A stretch of 64,000 bases of DNA, taken from the NCBI GenBank assembly GCA_946965045.2, contig OX337236.1, positions 124,001 through 188,000 on the forward strand, read 5' to 3'. The stretch is from Epithemia pelagica. Its lineage: Eukaryota > Protista > Bacillariophyta. Below the pieces are notes generated by a model, which was not told where the DNA came from, did no database searches, and saw nothing but the letters and a program-made list of their open reading frames with translations. Position 1 is the first letter of the stretch. Each line of letters opens with the position of its first letter. Below are positions 28,638 through 52,641 of this stretch, one piece after another. The position numbers and the translations under genes were made by a program.

Positions 28638-28681
28638 AAGAGTACTTCACGTCAACAACGGAGGTACTTAGTGTAATGAAT

Positions 28682-30523: not shown

Positions 30524-31657
30524 TTAGGATTGAACGGCCATGATACTGTCTTGTTTGGCTTGGGATACATGATTGAGTTTGTGCAAGACTTGGTCAGCCA
30601 AGTCTTGAATTTTGGTTTGCAATCGAAAGGCTTCATCTTTGGACACATGTTCGAGTTTGCCCGCGACACCCTGTTTGACCACATCCAAATGTTTGCGTCG
30701 AATGGCTCGTAATTTTTGTCGAATGTGCTCCGTTTTCTTGGCCACTTGTTTGCACGTCTTTTCTCGCGTTTCCATGGAGATGCGAGGGAGGGGAATGCGT
30801 ACCACACCGCCCTCTTCGACGGACGGATTCATTTCCAATTGGATTCGAATGGCTTCGCACACGGGGGACGCGACGTTGGGATCAAAACACGTGGCATGGG
30901 CTACCGTGGAAGACGTAATGACGACTTGGGCAATGGTTTTCAAGGGTACCGTTTCGCCATAGACGGGGACAGAGACATCGTCAAAGAGTTCCGGGGTCGG
31001 TTCCGCCCCTCGAATCTTTTGGAGGGAGTCCGTAAAGGATGCCAAGATTTGATCCATGCGTTCCTGGACAAGTTTGGGATCTGGCAAGCCATCATCCTCG
31101 TCTTCGTCTTCATCAAGAGGCTCGTCATCATCAAAATACACGTGTTCCGAATCGGCTTCCACAATCTTGGCATTGGGAATGGTCTCCTTTGCGTCTTGGT
31201 TGTCATTATCATCATCATCATGTTTGCCCTTTTTGCCCTTTTTACCCTTTTTCTTTTTGCCACGAATTTGTTGTACCGCATAGAGTTTATTCTTGTGGTT
31301 GTTTTGTACAAGCTGCTGGGTTGGTTCGTCATGGAACACGGGTGCTACTTGTCCCCAAACCGTCGTGTTTAAAGCAGAAGAAGCAGATGTCATGAGCAAG
31401 GAGTGATGAGGCCACGAACAATACGAACGGGTCGTTATTCGTCCATGGTGGTTGGATGGTCTCTGTGACACTGCAAAGAATGATACTGGTGCGGCCAAGG
31501 GCGTTGTGGATGTTGATGTTGTTGTGCGAATCACGTTTTTTTGTGGTTGCCATACAACTGTGTGGATTGCGGGTGGGGTTCGGATTCGATGACTTAAGAG
31601 CCGACGGCTACGAATGAATGGCAGCAAGGATGATGACGAGGATGATACGGATTTCAT
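30524..31657 (-). CDS. RRF: Ribosome recycling factor, probably mitochondrial (377 aa)
   Basis: LQKIRG..PTPELFDDVSV, PLKTIAQV, GVVRIPLPRISMETRE, LRAIRR; Arg/Ser/Thr-rich leader without a signal peptide. Confidence 0.88.
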   Translation of the reverse strand: MKSVSSSSSSLLPFIRSRRLLSHRIRTPPAIHTVVWQPQKNVIRTTTSTSTTPLAAPVSFFAVSQRPSNHHGRITTRSYCSWPHHSLLMTSASSALNTTVWGQVAPVFHDEPTQQLVQNNHKNKLYAVQQIRGKKKKGKKGKKGKHDDDDNDNQDAKETIPNAKIVEADSEHVYFDDDEPLDEDEDEDDGLPDPKLVQERMDQILASFTDSLQKIRGAEPTPELFDDVSVPVYGETVPLKTIAQVVITSSTVAHATCFDPNVASPVCEAIRIQLEMNPSVEEGGVVRIPLPRISMETREKTCKQVAKKTEHIRQKLRAIRRKHLDVVKQGVAGKLEHVSKDEAFRLQTKIQDLADQVLHKLNHVSQAKQDSIMAVQS

Positions 31658-31742
31658 TGTGGATTGCAACAAACAATCGAACGACAAGGGACCACGACGC
31701 AGATGACAACAACAAGGGTCAATGATGAAAAGATACCCACAC
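31098..31742. repeat. 645-bp direct repeat (RRF 5' region), second copy 43177-43821
   Basis: Same length, offset 12079, identical translation; first copy ends exactly at the hAT left TIR. Confidence 0.95.
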
Positions 31743-32331
31743 CAGGGTGTGGAAGTCACTAGCGAAAAATTTTCTAAGTTCTGCAACTTTTGAACTTTTT
31801 CACCATAATTTCACAAATCAAATCATATTACTAGCCTTTCCCAAACGAACTTTTTGCACAAAGTCAAATCGCTCACATTTTTCATCGAACTTGACTTGGA
31901 CCCATCCAACTTAGTTATTTACAAGCTCTTATTACCGGAACATTGGCACACACCAATGTAATTATCCAAGTTGCAATTTTCTCACATAGTTCAATCAAGT
32001 TACATGTCTCCACTTATTGACTCGAAGTCTAAAGTCTAATTGCAAGTCTCAAGATTAGAACTAAATTCTCCAAATCAAGTTGTAATTTTACTTCATTGCA
32101 ACTAGTGTCAGTGTCGACTGTCGACACTTAGTCACTTGGCACTATCCTACAGTAACAAACACAGTCAACAAGATATAATCGGTACTGGCCCCTTACCTCT
32201 TAACACTGAACCCAACACACAATCTCTTCACCTCTGTTGTGGCTTGTTGCAGCGTTACAGCACACGAATGAGGTGTGATTTTTCCAGTTGACACTGTCGG
32301 AATCAAACAACCAATCTCTGGTTGAAAGCAC

Positions 32332-35300
32332 ATGTCTTTGTTGCCAATCGAGGACATTGAAGTAGATTTGAACTCCCCTGCTGTTTCCAGTCTTTCATCA
32401 GCGACATTCATGTATACCATGGCTCCCCAAGGAAAGAATCAACAGCAGTCATCTCAATCCTCCAAAGAAGCTCGACTATTGTCAGCAACTGGAGGTGACG
32501 ACAACAATGAAGAACCCACGAACCCACCGACAACAACCAATGAAAGAGAAAATGAAAACCAGGCGCCTCCTACAACAGCCAACAATGAAGACAACTCTCA
32601 ACAAGTTGCTGCTCCTGCTCCTACGGACGGGGGACCCTTGACACAAAGCCGAAAGGATGAAATCAAACAAGAGAAATCACATGTCTCGTTTTGTCCACCT
32701 CCGAAGAAGCTCTTTCGAAATTTCCAAAATTCGTTCTTTGGAAAAGTTCGTTACCTGAACTTCAAGAAATTGACCAGCACGAAGAAGACCTTAAAATCAA
32801 ACCCCGCTGTCAATTTGGGGAAAATGCCAGGTTTATTTTCGTGTCTGCAATTGTTAGAGTCAGCTTCTGATGAAGACAAAGAAATGAACGATGGCTATCA
32901 TTCCATTGTAAAGAAGCTTGTTGTTTGTCCACATTGCTTCGACGACCCGACTGTTAGTCTCGACAAATGTCTCCTTGGTCTTGGCAGAGGCCTTTCGTCC
33001 AACATCAGCACACACTTCGGTAAATACCACCCCGAAGTCGTGGAAGATACTGCCTCTGTTGCAACCAACCCTACTCAACAACCCATTTCCATGTATTCTG
33101 GCACAATGGTTAGCAAACAAGATGCCAGAGTAATGTTTCATCAGTCAATTTATAAGTTCGTGAATGACTGTGGTTTCCCGGCATCAACTGTTGAGAAGGA
33201 ATCGTTTAGAGATCTTCTTAAGTGTGCAATTGCCAACGCCCCAAAGCTCAAGGAAAAGGACTGTTCCATAAGCAACAAAGCAATCACTCGGATGAGATTG
33301 GAGTCCTACAATGATTTTCTCAAGACCGTTACGGAACTTGGAGAAAACGTACGACAAGCGTACCATGATCTATGCAACAAACCCATCGCCTTTTCTACGA
33401 TAACACACGACATCTGGCAGGGAAATGACAAGGATGTCCTTGGGGTTTGTTTGATGTTCACCGATCCTTGGAACTGTAAATCTTACAGACTTCCGATTGG
33501 CCTTTGCTCAACAAAGGGCCATACAGCAAAACAAGTAGCCGACCACACCTCATCAATCCTCAACGCTGTCGGCTTTACGCAACAAGACCTCTCTGCCTCC
33601 GTGAATGACAACACGAACTCCGCCGTGTTGGCTGGAAAGTATATAGTGGGTAATAAGACAGGCGGCAAGTGCGACATGCACAGGGCCGAACTGATCTTGA
33701 AACACTCCACAGGTCTGGCAGTCCGGAAAAAAAAGGCGAAGTGGTGGACAGTAACGAGGAATTCATGACTGTTTATAGAAAATTCTTCAAATTTGCAGCA
33801 TGGATGATGAGTTCGCGTGCCAAAAGATTTGAAAAGCTACGTTCCTACGCCCTAGAACATGGGAGGAAGGTCATCAAAGTCTCTATTGCCGAATACAACC
33901 CGTGTTGGAGGCTGCATCATTACCTTTCATGACCTATTCCGGAACAAATTTGTAACGGATATGTATGCAAAAGAGAAATTTGAGTACAAGGACGACGAAT
34001 TCATTAAACATTATCCCTCTGAAGAGGACTGGCAGCTCTTGGCCGAATTCGAGGGAATCTTGGCCCCACTCAAACAAGTCTCCATGTCACTCCAAGTTGA
34101 CGACCCTTCTGCATCGGCTTGTTCATTGCTGGAAATCTTCACCAGTAAGCATTGTGTGGAAGTTATGAAAGATAAGGGATAAGGGAGTGCCCGTGTTGAC
34201 TGTTACTGGGCCTAATGCACGCCCATGGGATGCCAGTCTCACCATCGCCAAGCTTCAATTGTATCGAGACATTGTAACATAGGACAAATTGTCAGAAAAG
34301 AGTCAATTGTTGATCGAGCGAGTACTTGTGGAATATACAAACTACATTCAGGAAGGCCATGACTCCCACGCTGAACACGCCATGTGTGGACATCCTTTCC
34401 TTGCATCTTATGGTCCCAACATACTGAAAACCATAAAGGTTTACGACGATGAGAGTCTTAAACGGATTCGGAAAGAATTTGTGATGGACATTGTCCGCAA
34501 GTTCTCGCAGCCAAAGAAGAATGGCACCAATCCCCAGTCCAAGTCGAATCAGCAGGAACGTGAACAACAAAAGGAAAGTACACCTGTGGAGATCATCGAG
34601 GACGAAGAGGAAGAGTCTTCAGTCCCAAAAGCTGTCTCGAATGTAATGGACTGCTTTAACATCTTCAAGACACATCGCATCACCAAGGAGAAAGAAAATG
34701 CTGCACTGATGGAGGCGACGGCAACAAGTACCAGTACAGATGACCAAGTTGATAGAGCCAAGCTATACAAGATGTGTGATGAACAGTTCGGACGCTATCT
34801 CGAATTCTGCGAGAACATTGTTCATGGATCCTGGGAGGACTTGATTTGCCAGTATCCCACTGCCGCATTTCTGAAACTATCTGGTTCGTGGAGCCGTGAA
34901 AAACGACAAGAATTCAAGTTGGCCTGTACGGAACACTATTTCCATGTCGTTGGGAAATATTTTGACGTCTTGAAATGGTGGTCGGACAACAAGATGCTAT
35001 TCCCCAAACTCTTTCCTAGTGCCTTGATTTGGATATCGAAACCTGCGACAAACGCATTCCAGGAACGCGTGTTCTCTCGGTCGTCGTTCATGGATAGGAA
35101 TCCCTTAATGAGACGCCAACAAGACAAGAACTTTGAAATGCGCACCATGGAAAGTATTACAAGGGAGGTGCGATCTGAGATTGTCAAGAATGAAAAGCTA
35201 CTCAAACAAGGCGCGACCTCCAACGAAAAAAAGGCAGCCAGTGGCCGCCAAGCAAAGAAGGTGATAGATCTCAGCCAGGAATCTAAAGGGGAAGAAGTCA

Positions 35301-36004
35301 GTCAGGTACAACAGACCGCACAACAACGCACCCCGGCAGCAGGAACACAAGTTCCTGTTGTCCCACTGGAAAAAGCCACACCAACACAATCCGATATGAC
35401 TCGGATGGAAACGGTACTACGAGCAACGTCGAAGCTGGAACTCTACGAACTGTCCGGAACTATTGGTGCCCACGGCATAACGGCGGAAACAAGTTACAAG
35501 TTCAAGTCAGTCAAAATGGTTGATAAGAAGACAGTTGTGAGCGATGCGACATGGGACAACGTCGAATTGGTTGATCTGGTAGACGATCCACGAGATGAAG
35601 ACCAACTAGAGGCTTTGGATCGAAAAGTTGTTGCTCCTTACGACGATGACGAAGACAAGGAAGATTCCGACACGGCGTTAAAAGAAGCCATCCAGGAAAG
35701 AAAGAATGAACTCATTCAACAAACCGCGTTGGAGAAGACTGTTGCTAGTCTGCCCGTTGCAAAAGCCAATGAAGGCACGAAAGGAGATAGTGGGAAACGT
35801 AAAGCCTCTTCAACTATTCAAAAAGGAAGGAAACGGACGAAACAGAATTCACTCTCTGAGGCACTCGCAAGAACTGTGGTTAGAACACCACGCCAGAAAG
35901 ACAATCGCAAACCACCCCCAACCCCAAACGACTCGCCAACGAGAAGAAGCTCAAGACTTGCAGAGAAGGAAGTCTCAAATGCGGACAATGACGGTACCAG
36001 TTGA
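32332..36004 (+). pseudogene. hAT transposase, disrupted
   Basis: BED-like CPHC..H, ITHDIW, NDNTN, CDMH, PNTTR, EEDW..LAPL, WW..FPKL..KPATNAFQERVFS; breaks at A8 33727-33734, near 33895, 7-bp duplication 34172-34185, TAG 34280-34282. Confidence 0.88.
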
Positions 36005-36106
36005 TCTCCGACCACGAACGTCACTGAAGGTGACAATGGAAGAAACGTCACGGAAACTATACATCCATAATTGCAGTGCATTTAGGTAAATACAATATAT
36101 TGACAG

Positions 36107-37949
36107 TCATTTAGTATATTCTTTTATCAACTGCAGAAAGAAATACTTGAGATGGCGAAGATTCGCTGGAAATTTAGATTCCGATTGGTCATGAGAGTGA
36201 GCCAAAATAAAAGACTCCATTTGTTCTTGGCACTTGCTTCTGGTCTGTGATTTGTTAAGTAGTTGTCCTAGAGAACCAAATAAAGGATTGATCTCCTCCC
36301 ATCGTTCTTTAGGAAGCCATGATTGAAGGTTCAAAGAGCATTCCATGCCGTCATTGATATGAGACTCCGTCCAATTGAGAACCTTAGTTGATCGGATAGC
36401 ATGAATATCTGAGGGAATTCCTTCCGTCCGGCCAAATGCCGTTTGTAGAATGATTGTTCCCGTCTTGTGGCCAATTCCAGGTAAGGTCATAAGCTCAGTA
36501 AGGGAAATGTCTTTAGGAATGCGACCTTTGTGTCGCTGGACGAAATAGTCCGCAGCGTTGACTATGCGTTCCGCATTGACACGATACCGTCCTGTTTCTG
36601 CAAACAAACTACAGAAAACATCCATCCCAAAATATGAAGACACTTCAATTGTTCCTTGTGCACTAGTGATGCCCGATTGGAATAAGCGAGGGATCACTTG
36701 AGAGAGACTTTGATCTGATGTGGCCGAGCTCATCAAGATAACAATGGGACACATGAAGGCTGGGTCAGAGTCTTCATATTCCGACATATTGTTGGTAATC
36801 CATTCGGACCATGTGTCTCTGGGGGCTTCCAAACCAGACTGAAGGAAATACCGACGTAAATGGGAAAGATTATCAAGTAAATACAGCCGGGAATCAATTG
36901 TGGATTGGTTTCTAATGGGGATGGAAGGGCGAAACATTCTGGTCATGACAGGTTTGGTAATTGCAGGTGTCCCAGGCATGTGTCTGTCGCCATAGACTAT
37001 CTGTTCCTTGGCGGCACATGATTGCAATAAAGCATGGCAGAAAACAGTTTTTCTTTGCCGAGTCAAGACATGGGCAGTGGGGGAAAATTGTCGCTTGGTC
37101 CAATATTCATCAATGACGGGAGAAGAAGCCCAATATTCATGGGTGACAGAAGTAGAAGCGTTGTTGCTATTTGGGCCCATGGTAGATTGAGAAGCTTTGG
37201 CAACTGGAGTTGATGGAGGACTTGTATCAATAGGAGGAGGGGACGTCGTTGTATCCAGTTTCATTGAGTAAGGGTCATCCTCCTTTGTGCTCTTCTTAGT
37301 ATGCGCAACAATGTCCTCAACAACGATGTCGATGCTTGGACTTATAAAAATAGGACACTCTGTCCGTAGGTCAAAGGAATTTCTAACCTGGATTCTGGCA
37401 TTGTGTCGGGTTATCCAGGTTAGAAGATTCCATTCCACGGAAAGTTTAGTGTAGTTGTTTTGCTGATGGTAATCGGCATTGAATTTTTGAAAAGCTCTGA
37501 GACCATTGGAGCAAGGCAAAGAAAATATTGGTCGGCATTTTCCTTCAATGGCGATGAAGGGGAGGTCGTCGGTGGGGGGGGTTCATCTCGTATGTGACTT
37601 GGAATGAGTCTTCTTCTTGGGAATACAGACCCGTAAACACTATTCGACAGACAGTGTTCAGTAAGCTTTCGAATGACATGCGACTTGGAGATAAACAAGG
37701 GTGGCTTGTGTTGGATGGATAGTCGACTTGTTGGTAGTGCAGACTTCCATTGTACCGGGTAAGCCACAGCAACACCACATCTTTTATGTTCTCCATTGCC
37801 AAGTCTTGTGTCGCCTTTTCCAAGGGAGTGGTTAACAAAGTTGAGTCCTCTAGCATCATGGTCATGAACGACATTGGAATATGGGTCACAGTGATGACTT
37901 GGTGACAAGTCACATCGAGGTTGATTGTAGGGTCATCTGATGCTTCCAT
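36107..37949 (-). CDS. Endonuclease III/NTH-like HhH-GPD DNA glycosylase with N-terminal extension; one frameshift at G8 37574-37581
   Basis: ILMSSATSD, LMTLPGIGHKTG (HhH, catalytic K), GIPSDIHAIR (catalytic D), WLPKERWEEIN; the 37545-37949 ORF joins the 36107-37519 ORF if the run is 7 nt. Confidence 0.88.
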
Positions 37950-38888
37950 TGTACTTGAATATTAGATGCATGGGGTTGGGGATGGGGAAATAATAGTGGC
38001 AATGAGAAATGAGAAGGGCGGGAAAACTGAAGGTTTTGTCGTTGATGGAAAGGAACAGAGGTAAAGGTGACAGGTGACAGTGGATTGGTGAATGTTGGGA
38101 GGTTGAGAGTTGTGAGTGTTGGTTGAACCTCTGTCGTGAGTCGTGAACGTTCTACTCCTCTGGGAGTGATATTGGTAAATATGTGCAGGAAGAGTGTGAA
38201 TAAATATGTAGAAACAGATAAGAGTGAATGGTTCCTCTGAATAAAAGTTGTTGTTTGTGACTACGACAACGAAGAAGTTGCAACTAATAGTTGTAACTAT
38301 GGAGGTGACAGAGGGATGAAGTTTAATTACAAGGGGCAAAGTTGCAACTTGGACTTGTTTAGTCTAGTTGCAGACTCAGAAAAGAAACTACGACTTTCAA
38401 AGTTAGTCTTAGTTAAGTTGCAGGTTCTTCATTGGAACCATATTTAATCTAGTCAAGTTAGTACCTTAGTCGTGTTAGACTATTAGTTGCAAGTTCATTC
38501 TGTATCGTGGTTTTGTGACTTGATTAGTTTAAGTTAAGTTAATCATACATGTTGAACTAACTAGTGGGTACAAGTCGCATCACAGTAAACTGTCTAATGA
38601 ATTATTAGTTGGGAAGTTAAGTCTAATGGCTGATTTTCCAACTTCCACACCCTGCCCCCAAACCCGAAACATTTCCCCGAGCCCCAAGTCAGCCCCGAGT
38701 CCGTCGGTTCCGCCCGCCCGCCCATCAATTGTGTCACGCCGCGCGCTGCATGCTCCATCATGGCGGTCGGCTGGCGACCTTCCCGGTACAAAACGCTGTT
38801 CGTGGCGGACGGTGCATCTCCTCTCTCACACTTTCTTTCTTCTCCCCATCTTTGTCCTGTGTGCTTCTGCTTGAGTGAATTCTAGACG

Positions 38889-39400
38889 ATGAGCGCCTCT
38901 CGAATTGAATACAGTGAAAAATATGCTGACGATGTGAACGAATACAGGTGAGAATAAAATTTTGGTTTGAAGGCAGCAAGATTTCGAGGCGACTTTCATA
39001 AGAATAGTCCTCCGTTGTGACATTTTCATCATTTTTTGTTCTTACGTTCTAATGTTGCATACGAACAGACATGTGATCTTGCCAAAGGAACTTGCGAAAA
39101 CTCTTCCGAAGTCACGTTTGTTGACGGAGTCTGAATGGAGGGGAATTGGGGTTCAGCAAAGCCGTGGATGGCAGCATTATGCAATTCATCGGTGAGTAGT
39201 TCGGCCATCTTAAGCAGGCCTCCAGACGTCATTCTCATATCAGTATTTGTTTCGACCTCGACAATCGCAGACCAGAGCCCCACATTCTGCTTTTTCGACG
39301 CCCCTTAGGAACCGATCCACAGAGTGGTCGAGTGGACGCAGAATTGGAACGCGCGGCTCGAGAGGAATACAAGAATCAGTTTGGTCTTCGACGCAAGTAA
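38889..39400 (+). CDS. CKS1: Cyclin-dependent kinase regulatory subunit; exons 38889-38947, 39069-39191, 39271-39400 (103 aa)
   Basis: [54 protein letters not shown] after removing two GTGAG...AG introns; 312 nt in frame. Confidence 0.96.
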
Positions 39401-39599
39401 AATTAGTTACGAATATTCCAGTCGTCCTATCTCAAACGGGGAGCACTCAATACACACCGTGCCCTTACCTCTCTGAACTGGCTTGTACCTGTGGTTGAGT
39501 CGTTTGGAATACGCATCTCACCGGGTCCTTTTTATCGAACGGCACTGAAACTAGTATTCATAATCCTTTGTGTTTGAGGAATTAAGGATTTTACATTGG

Positions 39600-40863
39600 C
39601 AGCTTTCTTGGCATCTTCTTGGGCATTGAACACGGAGTTCTTTCCCTTCGTTTTAGAACCGTGCCAGTCATTGCTGCTGCATAATTCATTATACTTAGTT
39701 TCGGCTAAGCGAAGTTAAACATCAACTTCCAAACCACCAGTGTCATCAGGATCCCCTTGAAGTTTACCAATGTCCCGTGCCATTGTGTAAGTTTGCTCGA
39801 TATAGCGGAAGTAAGAGTTAAATTTGCCAACGGATGAAGTTTGCATGACCTTTAGCACTTGCTGATTAAAGCGCTCTGGAACTTTCTTGACCCATTTCAA
39901 GCGCTTGTGTGCACCACGGATCAAACTTACAACACGAAGAACATTTTCACCTTGAAACTCATTAATCTTCAAATTCTTAACCAAATCTTTCAAGTGATCA
40001 ATAGCGGCTTCCGAACTTGAAACCAGGATGTTCATCATAATGACGAAGAGCAGAGGACCCCCTTGTTGAATGGTAGGGTAAGTCTCGAACTGTTCGTAGC
40101 ATTTTTCAAACAGACTTTGAGTCATGTTATTTTCCAGATGCTTGTAGGTTAGTACCAAATTCTCCCGGTACCAATCCTTCTTGGTCCAGCGGCGATACCA
40201 TTCACAACTTGCTGCAACTTCATCGGGAGTAACTTCCTCATAATTTAAATATAGATCTACAGTACGAGACTCGATACTCGGGGATCCCTTTGACTTGGGG
40301 AACACAATCGTGAACACGTCATGCATATCGTATACCATATGCGTGTCCTTGGTCTTGGAAATCATGATGGAAGTGTTGTAACACTCATCCAATTTCTTTT
40401 CATCGGTCAAACTCATACTCGTGAAAGTATATTTCGTTTGCGATGTCTTCACGGCCTCCTTGAAGAGATCTTGCTTCTTCTCCGAGGACATTTTCTCCCT
40501 GTTCTCTTTCCGATATAGAGGTCCTTGATCCGCGACACCATATCCCCTTGAACCTGGTTCCACCAGTTCAACTGCCAGTCCCCCAACCATGAATTGGGTA
40601 TCTGTATCTAACGGGTAGTCATTGCTCTTTGAACTCTTATCCGAATTGTTTTCATCGCTTGTTCTTCTCTGTCCTCTCTCATTAAGACCCTGAAGCGTTT
40701 CGTCGAGTGCTCGGAATCCAAAGTCGGATTCCCGATTGTCGGTTCCAGTCTGATCTTCCGCTGAGGCGTCTTGATAGTCCTCATCGTCTCCCGTGTTAGC
40801 CGGTGCTGCACCTGAAGCGGGTGAAACATTTGCCGAGTCTTCTGCTCGCGCCATTGTTCTCAC
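39600..40863 (-). pseudogene. gag: Truncated copia gag (premature TAA at 39715, no zinc knuckle or pol)
   Basis: GGPLLFVIMM..LKINEFQGENV..MQTSSV aligns with the gag at 769-1992; frame continues LRLAETKYNEL..DWHG after the stop. Confidence 0.7.
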
Positions 40864-41036
40864 CTTCTCTCTGTCCTATCTTGCCAGAGCACTCACTTCC
40901 TTGTCACCGTACGACCTTGGGAAACCTTCTACAGCGTAATACTTGGGCTCAGAACCTGCGAGTAGTGGAAAAGAACGGCGGTCTCTTTCCCATTGAGCAA
41001 TCCGTAAAAGGATACTTATTCTGATAATCACTATTA

Positions 41037-41204
41037 TGTTAGTCCTAAATTCTCACTAAATTCACTTGGATCTTTTCTTCAATATCTTTTGGATGAGTCA
41101 TTCCATCCATTCGTTCACATCTACGTCGCTCATCATTCGTGATTGATGAGTCTTGTTGCCGGGTATAAGCTTGCTACCCCAGCTATACTCGCATGTTCGC
41201 GACA
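41037..41204 (-). repeat. Possible 5' LTR of the gag relic
   Basis: TGTCGCGAACA...ACTAACA ends; shares TGTCG start and TGGGGTAGCA with the copia 1 LTR; no second copy in the window. Confidence 0.35.
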
Positions 41205-41237
41205 CAAGACACACTCTTGCGGTGGACGTTCATTGTA

Positions 41238-43736
41238 TTATTTATCAAATTCAAGAGTCATGACATACTGACAGATTGACGAACGCGCTTTCCGCTTGTC
41301 TGATTCTGAGATGGTTGCCACATTCGAGGAAATGGACCCACCTGTTGTTGTAGCCACCTTTCGTCGCTTTCGGCTTGTGGCTGCCTCACCCGCCTCTGAA
41401 CTCCAGTGGAACTGTTGAATAGTCTTCCAACCATTGTCAAACCGCTCGGGTGGCACAATAAAAACCAGAGAAAAGGGATCATCTTCAGAAAGACCAAAGG
41501 ATTTCCTTTGGCGAATATACTCGGGCCCTGATACGGTGTGGGTCTTTTGTAAAGTTATCTGAAGCCCAAGGTCAGCCCCAACCATCCCATCGACGTTACA
41601 GTATCCGTCGGGAGGCAAATGCAATGACTTCGATGATTTCAGCATTGGGAGTGCGTCGCTTCGCTCCTCATACGCCATTCCCTTTCCATTCGCTTTTACG
41701 GTGTCTTCAAATGCTGCAGCATCGGGGGATTCGTTTATCTTGTAGAAAGGATGGTTTCCGGTCGTCGAAAACAAGACATTGTTCTCATCAAGTTTTTCGG
41801 ACACGTTCACCCCTTGTTCGGTACCAGCAACCCCAGAGCCAAGTAGCTTACGACAGCGGGTTTTGATACCGATCTTTCTCATTCCTGCTTCGCCAAGGGA
41901 CAAGAATATGAGCACAGTTCGCTCAAAAGCGAGACCGATATCAGAAGCATCACGTTGGTTCCTCCACATAATGTCCTTATGAATCTTCTGTAGAATAATC
42001 TTTCCTGCTGCCTTGGCCGCCCCTGGAGAGACAAAATCAAGCGTCGCATACAACCTGTTGGGATTGTATCCATTCTCATCTTCTCCGGCACGAAGTGTGA
42101 AGAAACGCGTTAATAGTTTTTCGGAGGTAGAATCAGAGAAAGACGTCCCTTGAGCCAAGGCATTGAGCAGCGCTGGAGCATGCGTTTCAGCCTTTTCGGG
42201 TGTGATCTCAGCTATGCGTTTTCTATTTTTGTCGTTGTCTGTCAGATAACGGGGCAGTCCGCCCAAAATGTAGTAGTTCTCTTCCATGAAGAACAGCGTC
42301 TTGTCGAAGATGTGCTTGTTGGTTTGAAACACTCTAAGCGGTTCGTTAAACACCATGTACGGGAAAGCCACTTTCAGTTCCTCCAGTTCCCAAGGGCCGA
42401 GCACTAGTTCGGTCATTTCGCTGGAGGCCTTGAAGGCGCTTCCGAGGTGTCGGTCGTCTGGAGAAACGGGAATGAAGCGATGGCCACGTGAACTTATAAG
42501 TCTTGACGGAGTTGGTTCCACGGTTGGAGGGAACCAGGGTGGGTCGATCACAACGTCGAGAACGGAACAGTCGAGCCACTCCGCTGGTAGATTGATGCCT
42601 TCTTTGAGACGATAAACCGTCCACGCAGCACCGGCGGCTCCGTCGCCTTCTGACATGAACAAGTGCAAACTACGATTTTGATTATTCTGACCCTTCTCAA
42701 AAAGGATTGGCCTTCGTCGCTCTGCGTCTTGGTTCATGAGTGTTTTTATGTAGATCAAGGAAGCCCAACTCTTGCCGATACCGGGTGATCCGCGTACGGT
42801 GATTGTGACCGTGGCGTCATGCAGCAACCGCCGAGATTTCTGGAATGCGCACTCGACAACATCCCTCTGTTCTTTTCGAGTAACCACGTGAGGAGAAGCT
42901 GTGTCATCATCGAGTAGACTTTGCGACATTTGAGTGACTTCCACGCCTTTCCCCGCGGCTTGAGGCTGCGTGTCAGCAAACGTGCGATACGCGGCTGTCC
43001 ACCGCTCGTCCTTCTGCCACACAGCATCCAGAATGGCAGGAACCTGCTCGTTCGGAGCATTCGATACCCGTACATCAAGTATCGGTTCTGGAAACTCCAT
43101 GTCATTGTCCTCCTGATCTGGATCCAAGGACGGAGATGGAATGGCTTGCAGCAGTGTTGTTGGAATCAGGGGTGGGTCGTCTTCGTCTTCATCAAGAGGC
43201 TCGTCATCATCAAAATACACGTGTTCCGAATCGGCTTCCACAATCTTGGCATTGGGAATGGTCTCCTTTGCGTCTTGGTTGTCATTATCATCATCATCAT
43301 GTTTGCCCTTTTTGCCCTTTTTACCCTTTTTCTTTTTGCCACGAATTTGTTGTACCGCATAGAGTTTATTCTTGTGGTTGTTTTGTACAAGCTGCTGGGT
43401 TGGTTCGTCATGGAACACGGGTGCTACTTGTCCCCAAACCGTCGTGTTTAAAGCAGAAGAAGCAGATGTCATGAGCAAGGAGTGATGAGGCCACGAACAA
43501 TACGAACGGGTCGTTATTCGTCCATGGTGGTTGGATGGTCTCTGTGACACTGCAAAGAATGATACTGGTGCGGCCAAGGGCGTTGTGGATGTTGATGTTG
43601 TTGTGCGAATCACGTTTTTTTGTGGTTGCCATACAACTGTGTGGATTGCGGGTGGGGTTCGGATTCGATGACTTAAGAGCCGACGGCTACGAATGAATGG
43701 CAGCAAGGATGATGACGAGGATGATACGGATTTCAT
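41238..43736 (-). CDS. Chimeric ORF (832 aa): ~186 aa RRF leader fused to a Crinkler/RHS-type P-loop ATPase and restriction-endonuclease-like domain
   Basis: N-terminus identical to RRF; VRGSPGIGKS Walker A, LGPWELEEL, LGGLPRY, GLAFE, P..YCNVDG, LQITLQKTH, LVFIVPP..F. Confidence 0.8.
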   Translation of the reverse strand: MKSVSSSSSSLLPFIRSRRLLSHRIRTPPAIHTVVWQPQKNVIRTTTSTSTTPLAAPVSFFAVSQRPSNHHGRITTRSYCSWPHHSLLMTSASSALNTTVWGQVAPVFHDEPTQQLVQNNHKNKLYAVQQIRGKKKKGKKGKKGKHDDDDNDNQDAKETIPNAKIVEADSEHVYFDDDEPLDEDEDDPPLIPTTLLQAIPSPSLDPDQEDNDMEFPEPILDVRVSNAPNEQVPAILDAVWQKDERWTAAYRTFADTQPQAAGKGVEVTQMSQSLLDDDTASPHVVTRKEQRDVVECAFQKSRRLLHDATVTITVRGSPGIGKSWASLIYIKTLMNQDAERRRPILFEKGQNNQNRSLHLFMSEGDGAAGAAWTVYRLKEGINLPAEWLDCSVLDVVIDPPWFPPTVEPTPSRLISSRGHRFIPVSPDDRHLGSAFKASSEMTELVLGPWELEELKVAFPYMVFNEPLRVFQTNKHIFDKTLFFMEENYYILGGLPRYLTDNDKNRKRIAEITPEKAETHAPALLNALAQGTSFSDSTSEKLLTRFFTLRAGEDENGYNPNRLYATLDFVSPGAAKAAGKIILQKIHKDIMWRNQRDASDIGLAFERTVLIFLSLGEAGMRKIGIKTRCRKLLGSGVAGTEQGVNVSEKLDENNVLFSTTGNHPFYKINESPDAAAFEDTVKANGKGMAYEERSDALPMLKSSKSLHLPPDGYCNVDGMVGADLGLQITLQKTHTVSGPEYIRQRKSFGLSEDDPFSLVFIVPPERFDNGWKTIQQFHWSSEAGEAATSRKRRKVATTTGGSISSNVATISESDKRKARSSICQYVMTLEFDK

Positions 43737-44623
43737 TGTGGATTGCAACAAACAATCGAACGACAAGGGACCACGACGCAGATGACAACAACAAGGGTCA
43801 ATGATGAAAAGATACCCACACAGAAAACAAAGGTCCGGGTTACACTGACATCAAACGGTATGGGAGTGGTCGCGCATCAGCCGCTGGTAGGTCACTCCTA
43901 ACGAATGACCGTTCGTTGCTCACTTTTTGACGAAGAAGACTCCAAAACCCCAAAATGACCTCTCTCTTTTGTATGCGGATGAGCAAAATGTTCGAGTGAA
44001 TATAATCCTCCTCCTGCTCCCATCGTAAAAGTACACAACCAATCACTCTACGACGATTCACCCAAAAACACTATGGCAACGACGACGACGACGACAATGA
44101 CCACCATGGCAGCCGAGACCTCCGATCCATCCGTCGTGTCGTCATCGGATGTCGAATCACCCGTGGTAGGTCGTCTTGAGTGGCCGATCCAGATGTGTTC
44201 TTGTTGTTGTTTTTCTTTTCTTCTTCTTCTTCGTTGCTTCCTACTGATGAGACTCACAGTTTACTTGCTCAGAGATTTCGAGCAACGGGGTCTACTCCGA
44301 ACAAGGGATGCAATGCAAAGACACACACAACACGCAACAACTTTGTGGTGTGTTTGTTGTGTTTGCTCTTTTGTGTTGTGTCTCTTGAGAAAGAGTGTGT
44401 CCCATCATATCGTTGCCATGAAACCAACCATGTGCTAATCTTCTCTCTGACAGGACAACTACGAGAGTGAGGAAGAAGAGTAGAGGAGCGACGAGAGAAT
44501 TTAGTGCTCCTCGTGTGCTTGTGTATACTGGGCCAAGTGTTTGTCTTGTCAAAGAACAAAACAAAAAAATGGATTCCTTTACTGTCCACTCACGTATCTT
44601 TTGGCTTTACTTGATTTCAGGCG

Positions 44624-45461
44624 TTGGCATCTCAAGAACGCGAATCGTTACTCGTCTCATCTCCTTCGTCTCCGTCGTCGTCGTCTCGTGTTGGTGCCGG
44701 AGGTCCTCGCATGCAGGTTCCAGTGGGTGCCTGGAGGGATGACTTGTTTGATATTTTTCAACATGGCTACTGTCATGCCTCGGCCGTCTGGTCCTGTTGT
44801 TGTGTCCCCATTGCCGTGGCGCAAGTGGCCACACGGTTGCACTTGACCTGGTTGGGGACCAGTGGAACCGTCTCGGAATCCACCGTCACCTTTCGCAAAC
44901 TCTGGTACCTCATGTGGACCTATTGTGCCATTCGAGCTACCATGCTCTACCTCATTTATCTTGGTACGTGCGTAGTTCCGTATTCGATCGTAGAAACACA
45001 GAGTTTGGATTGTGTGGGAGCTGGTGTTGTATTCTGTCGTATTTACATAGCTTCCTGTGGTTTGTATGTTTCGGACACTGAACTCTCACAATCCGATTCA
45101 TACATTTCTCATACATTTCTTATCAAATATATGTACAGTCGATCCCAATGTGGACAGTGTGGAATGGGTAGAACCCTCTCAGGCCTATCACATTGTCTGT
45201 ACGATTGACGACTTGTTTTCCTATGCCTACCTCTTGTTTAGCATGGTCATTTTGTACAATACACGCCGCTACGTACGATCCAAATATGCCATTCCCGAAG
45301 GCGATCATTGTCCTTCGGGTTGTGAAGATTTTTGTTGTTCTCTCTGGTGTCCCTGTTTGTCGGCCGCTCAACTGCTTCGGCATACGGCCGATTATCAAGT
45401 CTATGGAGCTCGATGTTGTTCCGATACTGGATTGGCCCCCACCGCGCCCTCCATTGTATGA
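44624..45461 (+). CDS. PLAC8-family Cys-rich protein; intron 44964-45138; start uncertain (ATG 44711 or upstream)
   Basis: GAWRDDLFD, SCCCVPIAVAQ, RRYVRSKYAIP, CEDFCCSLWCPCLSAAQ. Confidence 0.85.
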
Positions 45462-46048
45462 ATGGGGTGATACCTATACTTTATTTTTGGCTGGATCGCA
45501 TATTATACCGTGGGATCCTCTCAGTGGTTATGATCCGCATGGTCAGTGTTGTTGGGAACCAACCAAAAAAGAAAAACAAGGTATCGTCATGCCACACCAA
45601 ACATGTCAAGATATTATTATATATAGTATCATCCATCACCATGACAGCCAAAAGTGCAGAACGGAGTCCATGCTGCGACACGTGGTCCATGATGATGGAT
45701 CTTATTGAGACTCTATTCTAAACTCGAACGGGGTTTCACCTTCCAATCCAATGGTTCCATAATAACCAAAAGAGTCCAGTGCCTACTAGATTCACAGCTG
45801 CGAAAAAGTGCTAGTGAAACAAAAAAATTAGCTTTCTCATACTACAACAGAGTGTATATTCCTCTCGTCTTGCCGTGGAAAGGCCAACTCTATAGAACAG
45901 GTACGCGTCCTTTATGCCCTTTCGGTTTCCTTCACGCACAGGATACTGCCAACCATGGAATGATTTGGATCGCTTTGTGAGAGCGATTCCATCCATGCTC
46001 CCTTATTCCAATTCGCAACCGGACGACACACCTACACACAAAAGCCTT

Positions 46049-48071
46049 TCATGGAGGAGGAGACTGGTGATTGTCTTCCATTTCCTTCCCGGCCGAGGCC
46101 AATCGATGAATGAGTCCGACATAAATGGGAATTCCTTGCAAAAAGACCGATTTGGGAATGTATTCATCATTTTCATGCAACATAATTTCGGTTCGTGCCA
46201 TGGGCGAAAATCCCAAGGCCCGAATGCCCAAGGCGCGCAAAAATCGCGAATCCGTGGCGGCGGGAAAGACACTGGGTTCCAGGGACAATCCCATGTCTGT
46301 CATTTGATCGTAAAAGAGACCATACCATGGATTGGTGTGTCGATCGGTAGATGTAATGGAATGTTGTTGCAAATCGTTGGATCCTTTCACGGAGTTCCAT
46401 TGCACCGTCAACTCTTCATCCGTCCTTGCTTGGTCCTGATTGCTACTGCATTCGCGACACCACAAGTCCAACATGGCACTAATTTCGGGAGGTGGCACAT
46501 GAGGAGAAATGCGAATGTCCAACGTCATGCTGGCCGAGCATGGAACACAATTGAGAGCATAGGAATCGCCGACTTTGACACCCTGTGTGTGTCGACGACA
46601 ACAGAGTCGCACCGCAAAGAGAAGGAGAGAGAAAAACAAACAAACAATGTCACAACAAGGATATGCACGAGACACACATACAGAGCGCATATTAAATGGT
46701 CAGGTATTCGATCCCATGGCATTCTCCCGAAAAACAAGGTTCCCCAACAAAAGGACAAGAGCAACCTACCGCTTCGAGTCGGGTGATATTGAGCGACGTG
46801 ACATCTCCCAATTCCTTCTTCTTTTTTTGACGTGCATTTTTGGCCGCCACGGCATGGGCACAATTTTCATGCGCGGTCAAGCCCAATTGAGAGCGTTGTC
46901 CTTGTCGAAAGGCCAAGGCCTTGTTGGCCAGTTCCAGTAGTTGTTCGACGGCCGTGTGATCAATAAAGCGGGATCCATGACCCGTCGGACCCGTGGCGGT
47001 AATATTGACCCACCACGGACATCGTTCCCCATAAAAGACGGAATACGTCTCGGTCGGACTGGCCAAGCCTTCGTCCAAGGCCAAGGCAATGCCCGGCAAA
47101 CTCTTGTACGTGGAGGATTCCAAAAAGGCTGCCATGCCGGCGCCGCCCACTTCTGTTTAGAATAGTATAGAGAGTATGTGTTGGGATATATAGATTCCAA
47201 TACAGAGAGGAGAGGAGTTCGTGTGAGTTTCACCACGTCCACGTGCCCTATAGTACATTCATGTCACCACACAACACACTCGCTGCCATCCTTCACTCTC
47301 TCGTTCTCGTTGTGTTTGTTGCACGTTCCCACACACGTCGCTCTATACCATACACGTACCTTCATCGGGCACAAAGGTGAGATAAATGGATCGTTCCGGT
47401 TGCCAGTCGGGCCACGTGGTATGCAATTTCTGAATGGCCTCGATATATTGAATGCAGACACTCTTCATATCTTGGGTGCCCCGTCCATAAATTCGGTCCT
47501 CTTGTTGAAGACCGGCAAAGGGTGGAGCGACAGTCCAATCCTTGGCGTCGGCGGGTACCACATCGTAATGAGAATTCAACAACAACACGGGTAAGTCCGG
47601 ATGACGACCCTTCCAAACAGCCACCACGACGGGCGAATGATGCGGGGCTTCGGGCAAGAACCATACGTTGTCGGATGAGATGCAGGGGATGGCCCGTAAT
47701 TGGTCGACCAACCAGGTCGCACACGCGCGATAGGCACCCGTTGTGGGAGCGACAGAAGAAACGGTTTCAAATTGAATCAATTCCACCAATTTCTCGACCG
47801 CCCGTGTCGCTTCCGTCTCGGTCAAGGTCACCATGGGTGCTGCTGGTTTGAGCTTTTTGGCCACTGGTTCGTTCGGATCCTTGTTCAGTATTTCGGACGA
47901 TTCCAACGTTGGCTTTGGATTGTCCTTGGGTTTCTGTTGTTGTTGTTGTTGTTGTTCGCCACCAGCAGCATGGTCGGTCGTTGGAATGGTGGTAGCGGGT
48001 GGAATTCCCATGGTCCAACACACAAAAGAAGAAACGCGAGTCACAGAATTGGCGAAAGATGAGAGAGGCAT
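46049..48071 (-). CDS. ACY1: Aminoacylase-1 (M20 peptidase); exons 47360-48071, 46770-47152, 46049-46582
   Basis: LNSHYDVVP, YGRGTQDMK, PDEEVGG, ALDEG, GPTGHGSRF, FPAATDSRF, LHENDE; spliced length 1629 nt in frame. Confidence 0.93.
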
Positions 48072-48079
48072 GACATCAT

Positions 48080-48198
48080 CAACGTCTGGCCATAGTCAGA
48101 ACCTCAAAAGCGACTAACAAGCGATCCTCTCCCAAGGCTCAACGTCTGTCCATAGTCAGAACATCACAGCGACTAACAAGCGATCCTCTCCCCAGGTT
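48080..48198 (+). repeat. ~60-bp tandem duplication in the ACY1/IMPDH divergent intergenic region
   Basis: CAACGTCTG.CCATAGTCAGAAC...GCGACTAACAAGCGATCCTCTCCC twice. Confidence 0.85.
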
Positions 48199-48371
48199 GG
48201 GTTGACAGCCATCCAGATGACTTTTTGTGTCTCTCTCTCATTCTTTTCCACTGGGTTCGACGATTGGATGGGCCAAACCAGCACCATCTTTCTTGACTCA
48301 ACGCAGACAGTGGCATCGACAACAACAACAACAACAACAACAACAAGAGCAACAAGAAGTAGAAGAAGAAC

Positions 48372-50042
48372 ATGAATGGCACGAACGAACTCATGAATGG
48401 AACGACACCTCCGACGACCACAACGACGACCAATGGGGTCAAGACGGCCGCCGTCGTGACTCCCACTGCCCCCGCCACTGGTACAATGCCTATTATGGAA
48501 GAGTTGGACGAGGAAACCTTGAATTCGGGTGCGGAAGGTTACACACCGTCGCAAATCTTTGTCCAAAATCCGGCCTGTGTCGCGTACACATACGACGATT
48601 TGATCATGATGCCCGGTCACATTCGCTTTAGCTTGGACGAGATTGACATTTCGTCCAAAATTACCCGCAATATTTCGTTGCAAGCGCCCTTTGTGTCGAG
48701 TCCCATGGACACGGTGACGGAACATCAAATGGCCATTACCATGGCCTTGCAGGGTGGCATGGGCATTATTCATTCCAACATGTCGGCTCAAGATCAAGCG
48801 GCCGAAGTCCGCATGGTCAAGAAATACAAGAATGGTTTCATTACCGACCCTGTCTGTTTGTCGCCCCAACATACGGCACAACATGTCTTTGAAACCAAAT
48901 CCAAACTGGGATTTTCCTCCTTTCCCATTACGCAAGATGGAAAAATGGGTGGCCGTTTGTTGGGCATTATTTCCAATCGCGATACCAGTTTTATTGAAGA
49001 TCCCAGCGTCTCGGTCGAATCCTTCATGACACCCCGCGAATCGCTCGTGGTGGCCCAGGAGGGCATTTCCTTGGCCGAGGCCAATGAAATGCTCAAGGTT
49101 TCCAAAAAGGGCAAATTGCCCGTGGTGAATGAACACGACGAATTGGTGGCCCTCATTGCCCGGACCGATTTGCAAAAGAATCGAGACAATCCCTTGGCCT
49201 CCAAAAATCCCGTCAACAAACAATTGTTGTGTGGCGCCGCCATTGGAACGCGACCGGCCGATCGCGAACGAGCTCGTCTCTTGATTGCGGCTGGTGTCGA
49301 TGTCATTGTCGTGGATTCCAGTCAAGGCGATTCCATTTATCAACTCGACATTATCCGGTACCTCAAACAAAACTTTCCCGACATTGATGTGATTGGTGGC
49401 AATGTTGTGACGCCCTCCCAAGCCTTGAATTTGATCCGGGCCGGAGCCGATGGCTTGCGTGTGGGCATGGGCATTGGATCCATTTGTACCACGCAAGAAA
49501 TTTGTGCCGTGGGTCGAGCCCAAGCCAGTGCCGTCTATCATGTCAGTAAATTTGCTCGTCAATTTGGCGTCCCCACCATTGCCGATGGGGGAATCAAGAG
49601 TACCGGACACATTACCAAGGCCTTGGCGCTCGGTGCCGGCTGTGTCATGATGGGATCCATGTTGGCTGGAACCGATGAAGCACCGGGCGAATACTTTTAT
49701 CAAGACGGTGTCCGATTGAAACGATATCGGGGCATGGGATCGCTGGAAGCCATGCAAAAGGGCAGTGAAACCCGTTATGTCTGGGATGACTTGTCGGCTC
49801 CGTCCGTCAAGGTGGCGCAAGGCGTGAGTGGTGCCGTCCAAGACAAGGGAACCTTGCGCCGGTACATTCCCTACTTGATGCAAGGTGTCCGTCATGGATT
49901 GCAAGATGCCGGATGTCCCAGTGTTCAAACCGCCCAAGAACGATTGTATGCCAATACCTTGCGGTTCGAAATTCGATCCCCCGCCGCCCAACGGGAAGGC
50001 AATGTCCATGGACTCCACAGTTACTCCAAACGATTGTATTAG
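48372..50042 (+). CDS. IMPDH: Inosine-5'-monophosphate dehydrogenase
   Basis: SSPMDTVTE, two CBS domains, [17 protein letters not shown] (catalytic Cys), IADGG, YRGMGS, VAQGVSG. Confidence 0.98.
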
Positions 50043-50572
50043 GCAGAATTAGAAAAGAACACAACACGACACTTTGCGCCAACCATGTGATTCTTTTATC
50101 CGATATACAACATTCAAAAGGGAAACAACGGTCCGCCGCGGGGACCAATCAGGAAGAGAATGGGCCGAATCGATTCTCTCTCGTTTTTTAGTAGTTCTAT
50201 ATACATTCTAATAATGATGGAATATTCCTTTCTGGAACGAGTATAATATAATAGCCTATTTTAGACAGACTTGAAAACATATTCGAACCGGATTGTCAAG
50301 GTTGGCTGGATAGGACCGCTGCACACTATTGTATGCCAAAGCAGAGAGATTGAACACCTTTTGGCACGGATTTTATACGCGGCCCGGTGGTCGCGCTTAT
50401 TCAACACGTGGCTGACCGTGACGAGGTGTGCTCGTAAAGGTATTGGGTGTGTTGACCATGGCAACTCAAACCGCACACTAGAACCGCGCTGAAACACTTA
50501 TTATTCATCGATTGCCTCCGAGTCGACAGTTCTTGTTTGGAAACGAGTGTGTATCATCGAACGTTATTGGCA

Positions 50573-52315
50573 ATGATTATCGGAACAATAAGAACAAGGT
50601 GGAGTTTGTTGGCTCGAATGCCTCCGCGCCTGTTGGGGATTGCATTCTTTGTTATGGTCCTCGTTTGGATGATTGGATCACCACCACAACAACAACCACA
50701 GTGTGAAGATGGTGTCTCGTTGATGGTTCATGGCCTTGTCATGCCCCTGCTTCGCATCCCTCCGAGAAGCTCGTTGGTCTTGTTCAGCAACAACAACAAC
50801 AATCCCTTGGATACATCCTGGACTGTACCGGAGGACGATCCCAACGATCCTCGTGTCATGCGACGAATGAGACGAGAGCAGCAACAACAGCAAAATAACA
50901 ACAAGAACCAAAAGAAGAAGAAGGATCCAGCCTCGGCGGCGTCGTCGTATCGGCAAGCACGATCTCAAGTCTCGAAACAACAACAAGCGTCGGCCGCCTT
51001 TGATTTACCACAACAACCGGTCGTCAAAACCATTGGAGGTGGAACGGCCATGATTTTTGCCATGGCACAACGCATGTGGGAACAAGAACGAGCCGATGAT
51101 AGTAGTACTACCACTCCAAATACTAATAACAACAACAACAATACACCGAAGAACAATCCACAAGCCTCCACGACACCCATAACCACCACCACAACATCGT
51201 CCTCGTCCTCGTGGACTGTTCCTCGATGGCGACCCACGGCCACACAAACGGTGGGAATTTCCAATTTCAATCCCGAATTTCGAACCCAATCGCCACCCAT
51301 GAACAGTCAAGGCTATGCCAGTACCATTTGGCGCAATGTCCGCAAACGCAACAAACCCAGTTTGTGGCGTCATGCCTTGAGACTCTACGATCGCATGGAG
51401 GAAGCCACCACCACACTGGACACGAATGGGAGTAGTAGTAGCAACAACAAGAACAAGAAAACGACAACGACGACGGTTCCACGCACCAATGAACATTATC
51501 ATGGAGCCTTGTTGGCGGCCGCCAAATTGGGATTGTGGGAAAAGGCCATGGAAATTTTTGATGAAGTACAAGAACGACAAGCCCAACAAGAGCAATCCTC
51601 AATGACCTTGTCATCGTCGTCGTCCTTACGCAAGCCCTACAGCAATAGCAACCGTGGAGGACTGCAAACGTCCAACAACAACATGATCAACAATAACAAC
51701 AATGGTCTGGCCAACAACAACAACAAGCTAAACAAACCATCGCCGCGAGTGCATGTGACAGATTACATGGTCGTTTCGGTTCTCTATGCTTGTGTTCGAG
51801 CCAGTCGGAACCACCAGTCCTCCTCGGAGGAAGAGGACGACGACGAACCCTTGTCCATTGACGAACGTCGTCAACCCTTGGATGCCGCCCGTGCCATGTT
51901 GGAACAAGTGTCGTCTCAATACGATTTGATTCTTTGTCAACGGCATGTCAATCCATTGGCGGCGGCCTATTTGCAATTGCGGTTACGATCCGACGCCCAA
52001 GACTTGTTGCAGGGGTGGTTAAAGGATCGTCAAATTGGTCCCGAACCGGAAGATGGCGTGGCACCCTTTAACATTAACGATATTGGGACCAAGGACAAGG
52101 CCTCGTATACGCTCTTGGTAACGGGGGCCGTCCAAGACGATGATTGGACGGGAGCGGTCCAAGCCCTGTCCAACATGACCCGGGCCGGACTCTATCCCAC
52201 CCAACGACATTTGAATGCCTGGAATGAAGTCTCGGAACGCAAAACCAAACATCGGACCACCCGGAGTTGGAAAAAGAAACGAGATGAATTGTGGATTGAA
52301 CGAGGATTGCGATAA
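50573..52315 (+). CDS. PPR-like helical repeat protein with hydrophobic N-terminus (start uncertain)
   Basis: HYHGALLAAAKLGLWEKAMEIFDEV; SYTLLVTGAVQDDDWTGAVQALSNMTRAGLYP; poly-N/Q/T linkers. Confidence 0.65.
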   Translation: MIIGTIRTRWSLLARMPPRLLGIAFFVMVLVWMIGSPPQQQPQCEDGVSLMVHGLVMPLLRIPPRSSLVLFSNNNNNPLDTSWTVPEDDPNDPRVMRRMRREQQQQQNNNKNQKKKKDPASAASSYRQARSQVSKQQQASAAFDLPQQPVVKTIGGGTAMIFAMAQRMWEQERADDSSTTTPNTNNNNNNTPKNNPQASTTPITTTTTSSSSSWTVPRWRPTATQTVGISNFNPEFRTQSPPMNSQGYASTIWRNVRKRNKPSLWRHALRLYDRMEEATTTLDTNGSSSSNNKNKKTTTTTVPRTNEHYHGALLAAAKLGLWEKAMEIFDEVQERQAQQEQSSMTLSSSSSLRKPYSNSNRGGLQTSNNNMINNNNNGLANNNNKLNKPSPRVHVTDYMVVSVLYACVRASRNHQSSSEEEDDDEPLSIDERRQPLDAARAMLEQVSSQYDLILCQRHVNPLAAAYLQLRLRSDAQDLLQGWLKDRQIGPEPEDGVAPFNINDIGTKDKASYTLLVTGAVQDDDWTGAVQALSNMTRAGLYPTQRHLNAWNEVSERKTKHRTTRSWKKKRDELWIERGLR

Positions 52316-52641
52316 GAATTTAAAAGGATTTGTTACTTTTTTTATTGCAAAGAGTCGTATTCTTGCTCTTGGAGTGTCAATGAGCCGATGCATGTGTCCT
52401 TGTGTCATTAGAGAGAATGATGATGATGACTGAATAGGACCCATCTGTGCTGTCGTTTTGTTGGAGCTGCTGCTTCTCCACAGGAAGCACAGATTACCCA
52501 CAGGGAAATACTCGCATCCGTCTCTAAAAAGGGAGCATGTTTTGGAAAACCATGGTCTCTAGTAAACTATAAAGTGTTTTGTACAAAAGCAGACGATTTG
52601 TCTTTTGTTCATTGTGTGGAAACCAGACTGCCTCCAGGAAG

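Follow-up and report, generated by a model that had tools for sequence, protein, structure and literature searches.

A probable, very recent, transposon-associated rearrangement with an intact fusion of an RRF leader and a Crinkler/RHS-like gene in the diatom Epithemia pelagica

How did the 5' part of a gene for ribosome recycling factor (RRF) come to stand, in frame and unchanged, ahead of a gene of Crinkler/RHS type (CR gene)? The question is raised by a 64,000-nucleotide stretch of the Epithemia pelagica genome (assembly GCA_946965045.2, contig OX337236.1, positions 124,001 to 188,000 of the forward strand), which is called the window here and to which all positions refer. An earlier note had proposed, from the letters alone, a newborn chimeric gene made of the RRF 5' end and a CR-like gene. 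We identified both parents and a clean junction, and found 0 differences in 645 bp between the fused leader and its source, so the chimera proposed in that note stands. We consider it likely that the locus is a real and very recent rearrangement at the DNA level in a diploid diatom, a transposon-associated patchwork in which the fusion open reading frame (ORF) has stayed intact.

The rearrangement is framed by a direct repeat, whose copies A1 and A2 (Table 1) are 100% identical over 645 bp, are spaced 12,079 bp apart and lose their identity sharply at either end. The insert that they flank measures 11.4 kb, and the present order is RRF body, A1, hAT transposon, segment Y, copia fragment with CR gene, A2 and upstream region, with a repeat unit of 12,079 bp. 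The RRF gene proper (coding sequence 31657-30524) remains intact and expressed; its product matches Pfam RRF on residues 209-373 (E 1.3e-34) and TIGR00496 frr at 113 bits. The repeat ends 22 residues upstream of the RRF domain, and it is A2, not A1, that keeps the ancestral upstream DNA of RRF.

The chimeric ORF (43736-41238, minus strand) has 832 codons and a stop at 41238-41240. A2 supplies the start codon M1 at 43736, RRF codons 1-186 and 2 nt more. Codon 187 is completed by an extra C at 43176, and the frame is open from there to the stop. Since only RRF residues 1-186 are held and the RRF domain (PF01765) starts at 209, the domain is absent, in agreement with the earlier description of some 186 residues identical to RRF that end before it. 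A run of 646 amino acids following the leader had also been claimed. The 646 further codons are indeed in frame and open, but the first 25 belong to the 5' leader of the parental CR gene and not to the family protein, whose own start is M213 of the fusion (43100-43098). This 75-nt leader is open in the fusion frame because it is part of an ORF extension at the parental locus. Two motifs picked out beforehand, GSPGIGKS (residues 317-324) and NVDGM...LQITLQKTH (residues 714-733), were both found and are conserved in 17 homologues. Two contigs encode the very same 744-aa version of the chimera, which begins at M89.

Within the window there is no parental copy of the CR gene. Five other proteins of the same 90%-identity cluster are encoded in the assembly ENA ERZ21939226, at three loci: locus I (L001, 690 aa, and L005, 688 aa, both with the ORF extended upstream), locus II (L007, 622 aa, and L008, 620 aa) and locus III (L006, 620 aa). 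The CR copy in the window has an intact ORF and is 98.9-99.4% identical to L001 and L005, with homology that starts exactly at 43175, whereas homology to loci II and III starts only at 43104-43105, just 5' of the ATG at 43100. The parental gene that the earlier note had called for was found in this way as locus I, whose proteins P0001 and P0144 match from the first base past the junction. On the coding strand the junction reads RRF ...GAAGACGA, one C, and then CCACCCCTGATT... of the locus I leader. On the other side, homology passes the stop codon, a copia long terminal repeat (LTR) and 1.36 kb of copia interior before it ends abruptly at 39595. By these alignments, the copied piece amounts to 3.58 kb of genomic DNA from a locus-I-type CR locus carrying copia. 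The copia piece is 99.2-99.3% identical to DNA downstream of the CR genes in L006, L007 and L008, where the element runs on into gag-pre-integrase and RVT_2 ORFs.

Of 1912 positions, the CR copy differs from each paralogue at 14-15. It has seven private differences, at 41557, 41587, 42172, 42387, 42640, 42664 and 42939, six of them non-synonymous, and all CR copies together show 18 non-synonymous and 4 synonymous differences. One assembly contains six near-identical CR proteins, which are spread over four loci and have three kinds of 5' context, a lineage-specific expansion with recombining N-termini. As a separate observation, paralogues on the same haplotig (L001 and L007 on ctg1352l; L005 and L008 on ctg1322l) differ at 3 of 1912 sites and alleles at 5-8, a pattern of gene conversion between CR loci about 20-40 kb apart, and the paralogues evolve in concert.

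At the other end of the insert, A1 abuts the inverted-repeat tip of the hAT transposon at 31743. The 8-bp flanks of this element, ACCCACAC and CCCCCAAA, are unlike, so it has no target-site duplication, and no two of ACCCACAC, CCCCCAAA and TCGTCTTC match. Only the edge at 31743 is a transposon tip; the edge at 43176 is CR leader DNA. The hAT interior holds a Dimer_Tnp_hAT ORF, and the element also carries extra ORFs of 478, 443 and 134 aa. We considered a macrotransposon with a second hAT-like end at 43176 or 43813 and rejected it: the sequences there are unlike the inverted repeat, and no 8-bp duplication fits. In two DNA runs of this diatom (X1 and X2), the depth over the copia LTR is about 25-35 times that of single-copy DNA. 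Over the LTR and the adjoining copia (40596-41193), the depth is roughly 12-35 times single copy in the DNA runs, the mark of an abundant copia family.

Table 1. Parts of the rearranged RRF-CR locus, by position in the window
Feature	Position	Strand	Remarks
Parental RRF gene	30524-31657	-	377 codons + stop, unspliced; Pfam RRF and TIGR00496 matches
Repeat copy A1	31098-31742	-	final 70 nt of upstream DNA, 16-nt 5' untranslated region, RRF codons 1-186 + 2 nt
hAT transposon	31743-38654		6912 bp; inverted repeats CAGGGTGTGGAAGT(C/T) at 31743-31757 and 38640-38654
Segment Y	38655-39594		940 bp; found only here and on the allelic haplotig among fetched loci
copia-type internal piece	39595-40955	-	contains a gag-like ORF (39715-40863); part of the same copied piece as the CR gene
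copia LTR	40956-41193	-	238 bp; in L006, L007 and L008 two direct copies lie 6.9 kb apart
CR/RHS-type gene copy	41194-43175	-	44-nt 3' flank, native coding sequence 43100-41238 (620 codons + stop), 75 nt of locus-I-type 5' leader
Chimeric ORF	41238-43736	-	P-loop 317-324, Walker B VLDVVIDP 392-399, conserved basic patch RKRRK 789-793
Junction base C	43176	-	templated by neither parent (three-way alignment of chimera, RRF and L001/L005)
Repeat copy A2	43177-43821	-	RRF leader joined to the CR gene
Ancestral RRF upstream DNA	43822-43988		common to the divergent spliced PLAC8-like gene

The structure is present on both haplotypes and is young. The window is identical to contig ctg1327l, and its allelic haplotig, ctg1355l, is collinear with it, having the same order of parts, 14 substitutions across them, an identical 744-aa ORF and flanking genes that are 91-99% identical. 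A1 and A2 show 0 differences in 645 bp on both haplotypes. Over 29240-43850, about 1 substitution per kb separates the haplotypes, and A1, A2, Y and the CR gene are free of such differences. Beyond 43851 on the right, the divergence is 32 per kb and rises to 7-9% further out, and to the left of 29240 it is about 14% (290 bp, 28950-29239). Because divergence is low within the tract and high around it, the tract is far younger than the alleles nearby, and its presence on the homologue has to be due to copying. Mitotic recombination between homologues has been documented in diatoms (bioRxiv 10.1101/2020.11.08.373134). Two observations concern the surroundings. Allelic divergence over 43851-53598 is 3-9%, and a copia-type element of about 6 kb at 22897-28930 (229-bp LTRs at 22976-23204 and 28696-28924) is replaced by 35 bp on the allelic contig (L002:12469-12503), an insertion polymorphism between the haplotypes.

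The two DNA runs and an RNA-like run (X4), all in the form of contigs, were compared with the structure. In X1 and X2 the repeat forms an exact 645-bp unitig with a depth of 285 and 310, where the single-copy contig next to it has 142 and 152, which puts the repeat at 2.0 times single-copy depth, and the unitig breaks at both edges in both runs. At 43177 and 43821, A2 has loose ends that carry the two flanks of A1 in X1, X2 and X4, and a contig overlaps the edge between A2 and the upstream DNA. An apparent joint from 43734 to 44079 in X2 was discarded as a low-complexity match of an unrelated contig.

How might such a patchwork have formed? The ancestral order was RRF body, leader A and upstream region. 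Because the edge of the duplication coincides to the base with the hAT tip and a target-site duplication is lacking, we infer a break at the end of the transposon, either transposase-made or replication-associated. Repair would have proceeded by end joining or template switching, as suggested by the blunt joins and by filler DNA from elsewhere, and would have pulled in this filler while re-copying 645 bp of the target. The 3.58-kb piece of copia and CR gene was copied as DNA from a locus-I-type locus, from 75 nt upstream of the CR start codon, and its junction with RRF codon 186 is blunt and contains a single untemplated base. That the joint is in frame is a matter of chance, one case in three. 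On this account, gene conversion later copied the rearranged tract onto the homologous chromosome. In maize, break repair after hAT activity is known to make duplications, composite insertions and chimeric genes (PMC4270019, PMC1592236).

Several points weigh against this reconstruction. All DNA evidence comes from one sequencing project, and among the matches listed no record bridges 43176/43177. Further hAT copies were sought by word search with the 478-aa and 558-aa ORFs, and only the element's own contig or relatives at 42% protein identity or less were returned, so that the element may be single-copy. The origin of Y was sought through its 84-aa ORF, with no record outside the window's own contig. 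These protein-ORF searches thus yielded neither a second hAT copy nor another home for Y. Moreover, the insert has one transposon-tip end and no flanking 8-bp duplication, and is therefore not a canonical hAT composite insertion.

Next comes the question of whether the fusion is used. X4 behaves as RNA, since the gene next door has GT..AG joints in it and intergenic repeats have no coverage; a spliced contig begins at 43989 and has GT..AG joints at 44164-44620. This neighbour is a PLAC8-like gene on the plus strand (43989-45200, GT..AG introns at 44165-44619 and about 44963-45137), and it and the A2 leader have about 240 bp of promoter region in common. The X4 contig that carries the RRF leader (1352 nt) starts at 31673, the equivalent of 43752, and runs through the whole RRF gene without branching at 43177. 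Expression of the CR family is high, and its abundant X4 contigs exit the window at 43175 into the 5' end of locus I. At chimera-private sites these contigs have the paralogue base, and the same holds for the DNA contigs, where minority variants are collapsed. The transcription across 43176/43177 foreseen in the earlier note thus failed to appear: in this one RNA-like run there was neither a branch at 43177 nor a chimera-private allele, in contigs that drop rare variants and cannot prove the absence of a fusion transcript. Expression of the fusion is unsupported and is probably low or absent.

The first 100 residues of the leader contain 0 acidic, 11 Arg/Lys and 33 Ser/Thr residues and lack a hydrophobic signal-peptide core, a composition that fits a mitochondrial presequence. 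The mitochondrial-type leader proposed beforehand is borne out at the level of composition, and mitochondrial import would be a prediction from it. If made, the product would consist of a presequence and an acidic/basic linker ahead of a complete P-loop nucleoside triphosphatase (NTPase) plus nuclease-like protein. Such a product invites the view that this is a functional newborn gene, transcribed from the RRF promoter, imported into mitochondria and acting there as an ATP-dependent nuclease. The 832-codon ORF is intact and identical on both haplotypes, A2 keeps the ancestral upstream DNA with the same transcript start region as RRF, the leader is presequence-like, and the P-loop and every family-invariant residue are retained. 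However, the leader contig enters the RRF body unbranched, and the CR-type RNA contigs turn into locus I with the paralogue base at private sites. The preponderance of non-synonymous changes among the private substitutions is consistent with no constraint, the retained RKRRK patch, which is conserved in the family, resembles a nuclear signal, and zero divergence has left no time for selection to show. We regard a functional gene as unlikely at present.

Could the CR cassette itself be the agent? It might be a selfish mobile unit whose ATPase-nuclease makes or exploits widely staggered breaks, its insertions being flanked by long host duplications and often gaining a host N-terminus, with hAT and Y as passengers. 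At least four CR loci at 99% identity in three different 5' contexts, together with the concerted evolution among paralogues, would suit such a unit. Yet the 5' edge of the copy differs between events (-75 or -4), the 3' edge lies inside copia here and kilobases further in locus I versus II, and no terminal repeats were found. Loci I-III have no flanking host duplication within 10 kb, copia LTRs being the only repeats found. The varying copy boundaries and the lack of flanking duplications at loci I-III argue against a precise mobile element, and we think this reading improbable. The broader proposition that CR genes are self-propagating cassettes which land in host genes with target duplications of hundreds to thousands of bp, capturing promoters and targeting leaders, seems to us a long shot. 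If it held, the same nuclease would be aimed at different compartments, with a mitochondrial presequence here and possibly a plastid-type signal at locus I. At that locus the ORF extension (L001:10001-10130, L005:10001-10130) encodes a hydrophobic signal-peptide-like stretch ending in AAA and then W, followed by an acid-free segment rich in Ser, Pro and Arg. This arrangement resembles a diatom bipartite plastid-targeting signal and may be an earlier captured N-terminus, and X4 RNA contigs reach into it.

It is extremely improbable that the assembly falsely joined the RRF and CR loci through the repeat: the repeat is perfect, the data come from one project and the bridging record is missing as described, but a false join through a repeat presupposes that the repeat already lay beside the CR gene, two separately assembled haplotigs with different single-nucleotide polymorphisms have all junctions in common, the repeat unitig has doubled depth and stops at either edge in X1 and X2 but continues in the RNA run, and typical long reads, if used for this assembly, would be far longer than 645 bp.

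Having taken the rearrangement as the likely account, we turn to what its downstream part is. It belongs to a conserved family, with 21 word-search matches and 233 relatives found with a hidden Markov model (HMM), the close ones in diatom or marine data. Homologues begin 20-60 residues ahead of the conserved core, in which the Walker A motif RGSPGIGKSW, the Walker B motif DVVIDP, the block PPDGYxNxDGMxGxxxGxxxTLQ and a basic RKRR patch near the C-terminus are invariant. Scanning the chimera, the native 620-aa protein and the 17 homologues against Pfam and NCBIfam gave weak generic AAA matches and no family, and a PDB sequence search, with the protein and then with a profile, returned nothing relevant. 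By ESM features the protein lies at 0.98-0.99 to clusters named Crinkler or RHS. Its AlphaFold model (predicted local distance difference test, pLDDT, 68) aligns with a Crinkler-N-containing ESM Atlas cluster at a template modelling (TM) score of 0.45/0.49 and with an RHS cluster at 0.40/0.68 (0.68 by target; root-mean-square deviation 3.6 over 287 residues). Against the PDB, Foldseek with the full model found weak AAA+ matches only (ORC, RFC; E 5e-3). Six distant relatives (profile E 7e-19 to 2e-9) match Pfam RHSP (PF07999) at 16-24 bits (E 3e-5 to 7e-3), under the curated cut-off of 25 bits, and the chimera and the native protein have no match to this family; these scores point to remote kinship rather than RHSP membership. 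Based on the invariant Walker motifs, the ESM features and the shape match, the P-loop NTPase module is of CR/RHS type. The downstream parent as a whole is Crinkler/RHS-like at the level of remote homology, given the ESM features, the predicted fold and the transitive HMM matches.

The C-terminal domain modelled alone gave a confident fold, at pLDDT 82.7 and a predicted TM score of 0.82. Most of its top VIA-align rows are PD-(D/E)xK nucleases (SgrAI, BspD6I, McrC, Bse634I, Cfr10I, FokI), and E, D and Q are conserved in it. Because the best Z is only 4.0, Foldseek found no PDB match with this domain and there is no invariant lysine, a restriction-endonuclease fold is weakly suggested. Of the Crinkler/RHS ATPase-nuclease announced in the earlier note, the ATPase part therefore holds by remote homology, while the nuclease part is tentative. 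The accompanying idea of Crinkler header swapping holds up only in part: the header PF20147 had no match in the chimera, the native protein, the 17 homologues or 20 distant relatives, the break lies in the parental 5' leader, and the event has the look of a non-homologous patchwork linked to a hAT end, so it is a swap only in a loose sense.

A case in which both parents and every junction are kept at essentially zero divergence is rare, and the mutational mechanism can be read directly from its blunt joins, filler DNA and transposon tip at one edge. The locus also reveals a diatom Crinkler/RHS-like family that lies outside Pfam coverage and whose N-termini are altered by DNA rearrangements. 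Expression and import of the fusion, unsupported at present, would make it a natural case of a nuclease-like protein retargeted to mitochondria.

Among known systems, jingwei in Drosophila reportedly arose as a new gene by duplication and fusion, recruiting the 5' exon and promoter of a host gene. Similar to fusions of this type, the chimera places a promoter and an N-terminal coding part before the body of another gene, and both parents are kept. It differs in being much younger (0 differences in 645 bp), in not being retroposed and in that expression or selection is so far unsupported.

The CR proteins with NTPase and restriction-endonuclease C-termini (Zhang et al. 2016, summarised in PMC5289972) and trypanosomatid RHS proteins (PF07999) have the same layout as the diatom family, namely a P-loop NTPase, then a helical stretch, and at the C-terminus an alpha/beta domain that structurally matches nucleases of the restriction-endonuclease fold best. 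Near-identical multi-copy paralogues adjoining retrotransposons, variable N-termini and a conserved basic patch resembling a nuclear signal are further likenesses. The diatom family, in contrast, is without the Crinkler/ubiquitin-like header and the LxLFLAK motif, has no direct Pfam match (its RHSP link being transitive and under the curated cut-off), has no conserved (D/E)xK lysine and resides in a free-living diatom rather than a parasite.

Alternative transposition of the maize hAT elements Ac/Ds (PMC1592236, PMC4270019) offers another parallel, with differences at the edges of the insert. In the window there is one transposon-tip edge only and no 8-bp target-site duplication, unlike Ac/Ds composite insertions; neither a second element nor a fractured end lies nearby, and at least one distant locus supplied the filler. 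In both systems, however, a hAT terminus stands exactly at a junction, flanking host DNA is duplicated, the internal junctions have the 0-1 nt of homology typical of end joining, and a new in-frame chimeric ORF results.

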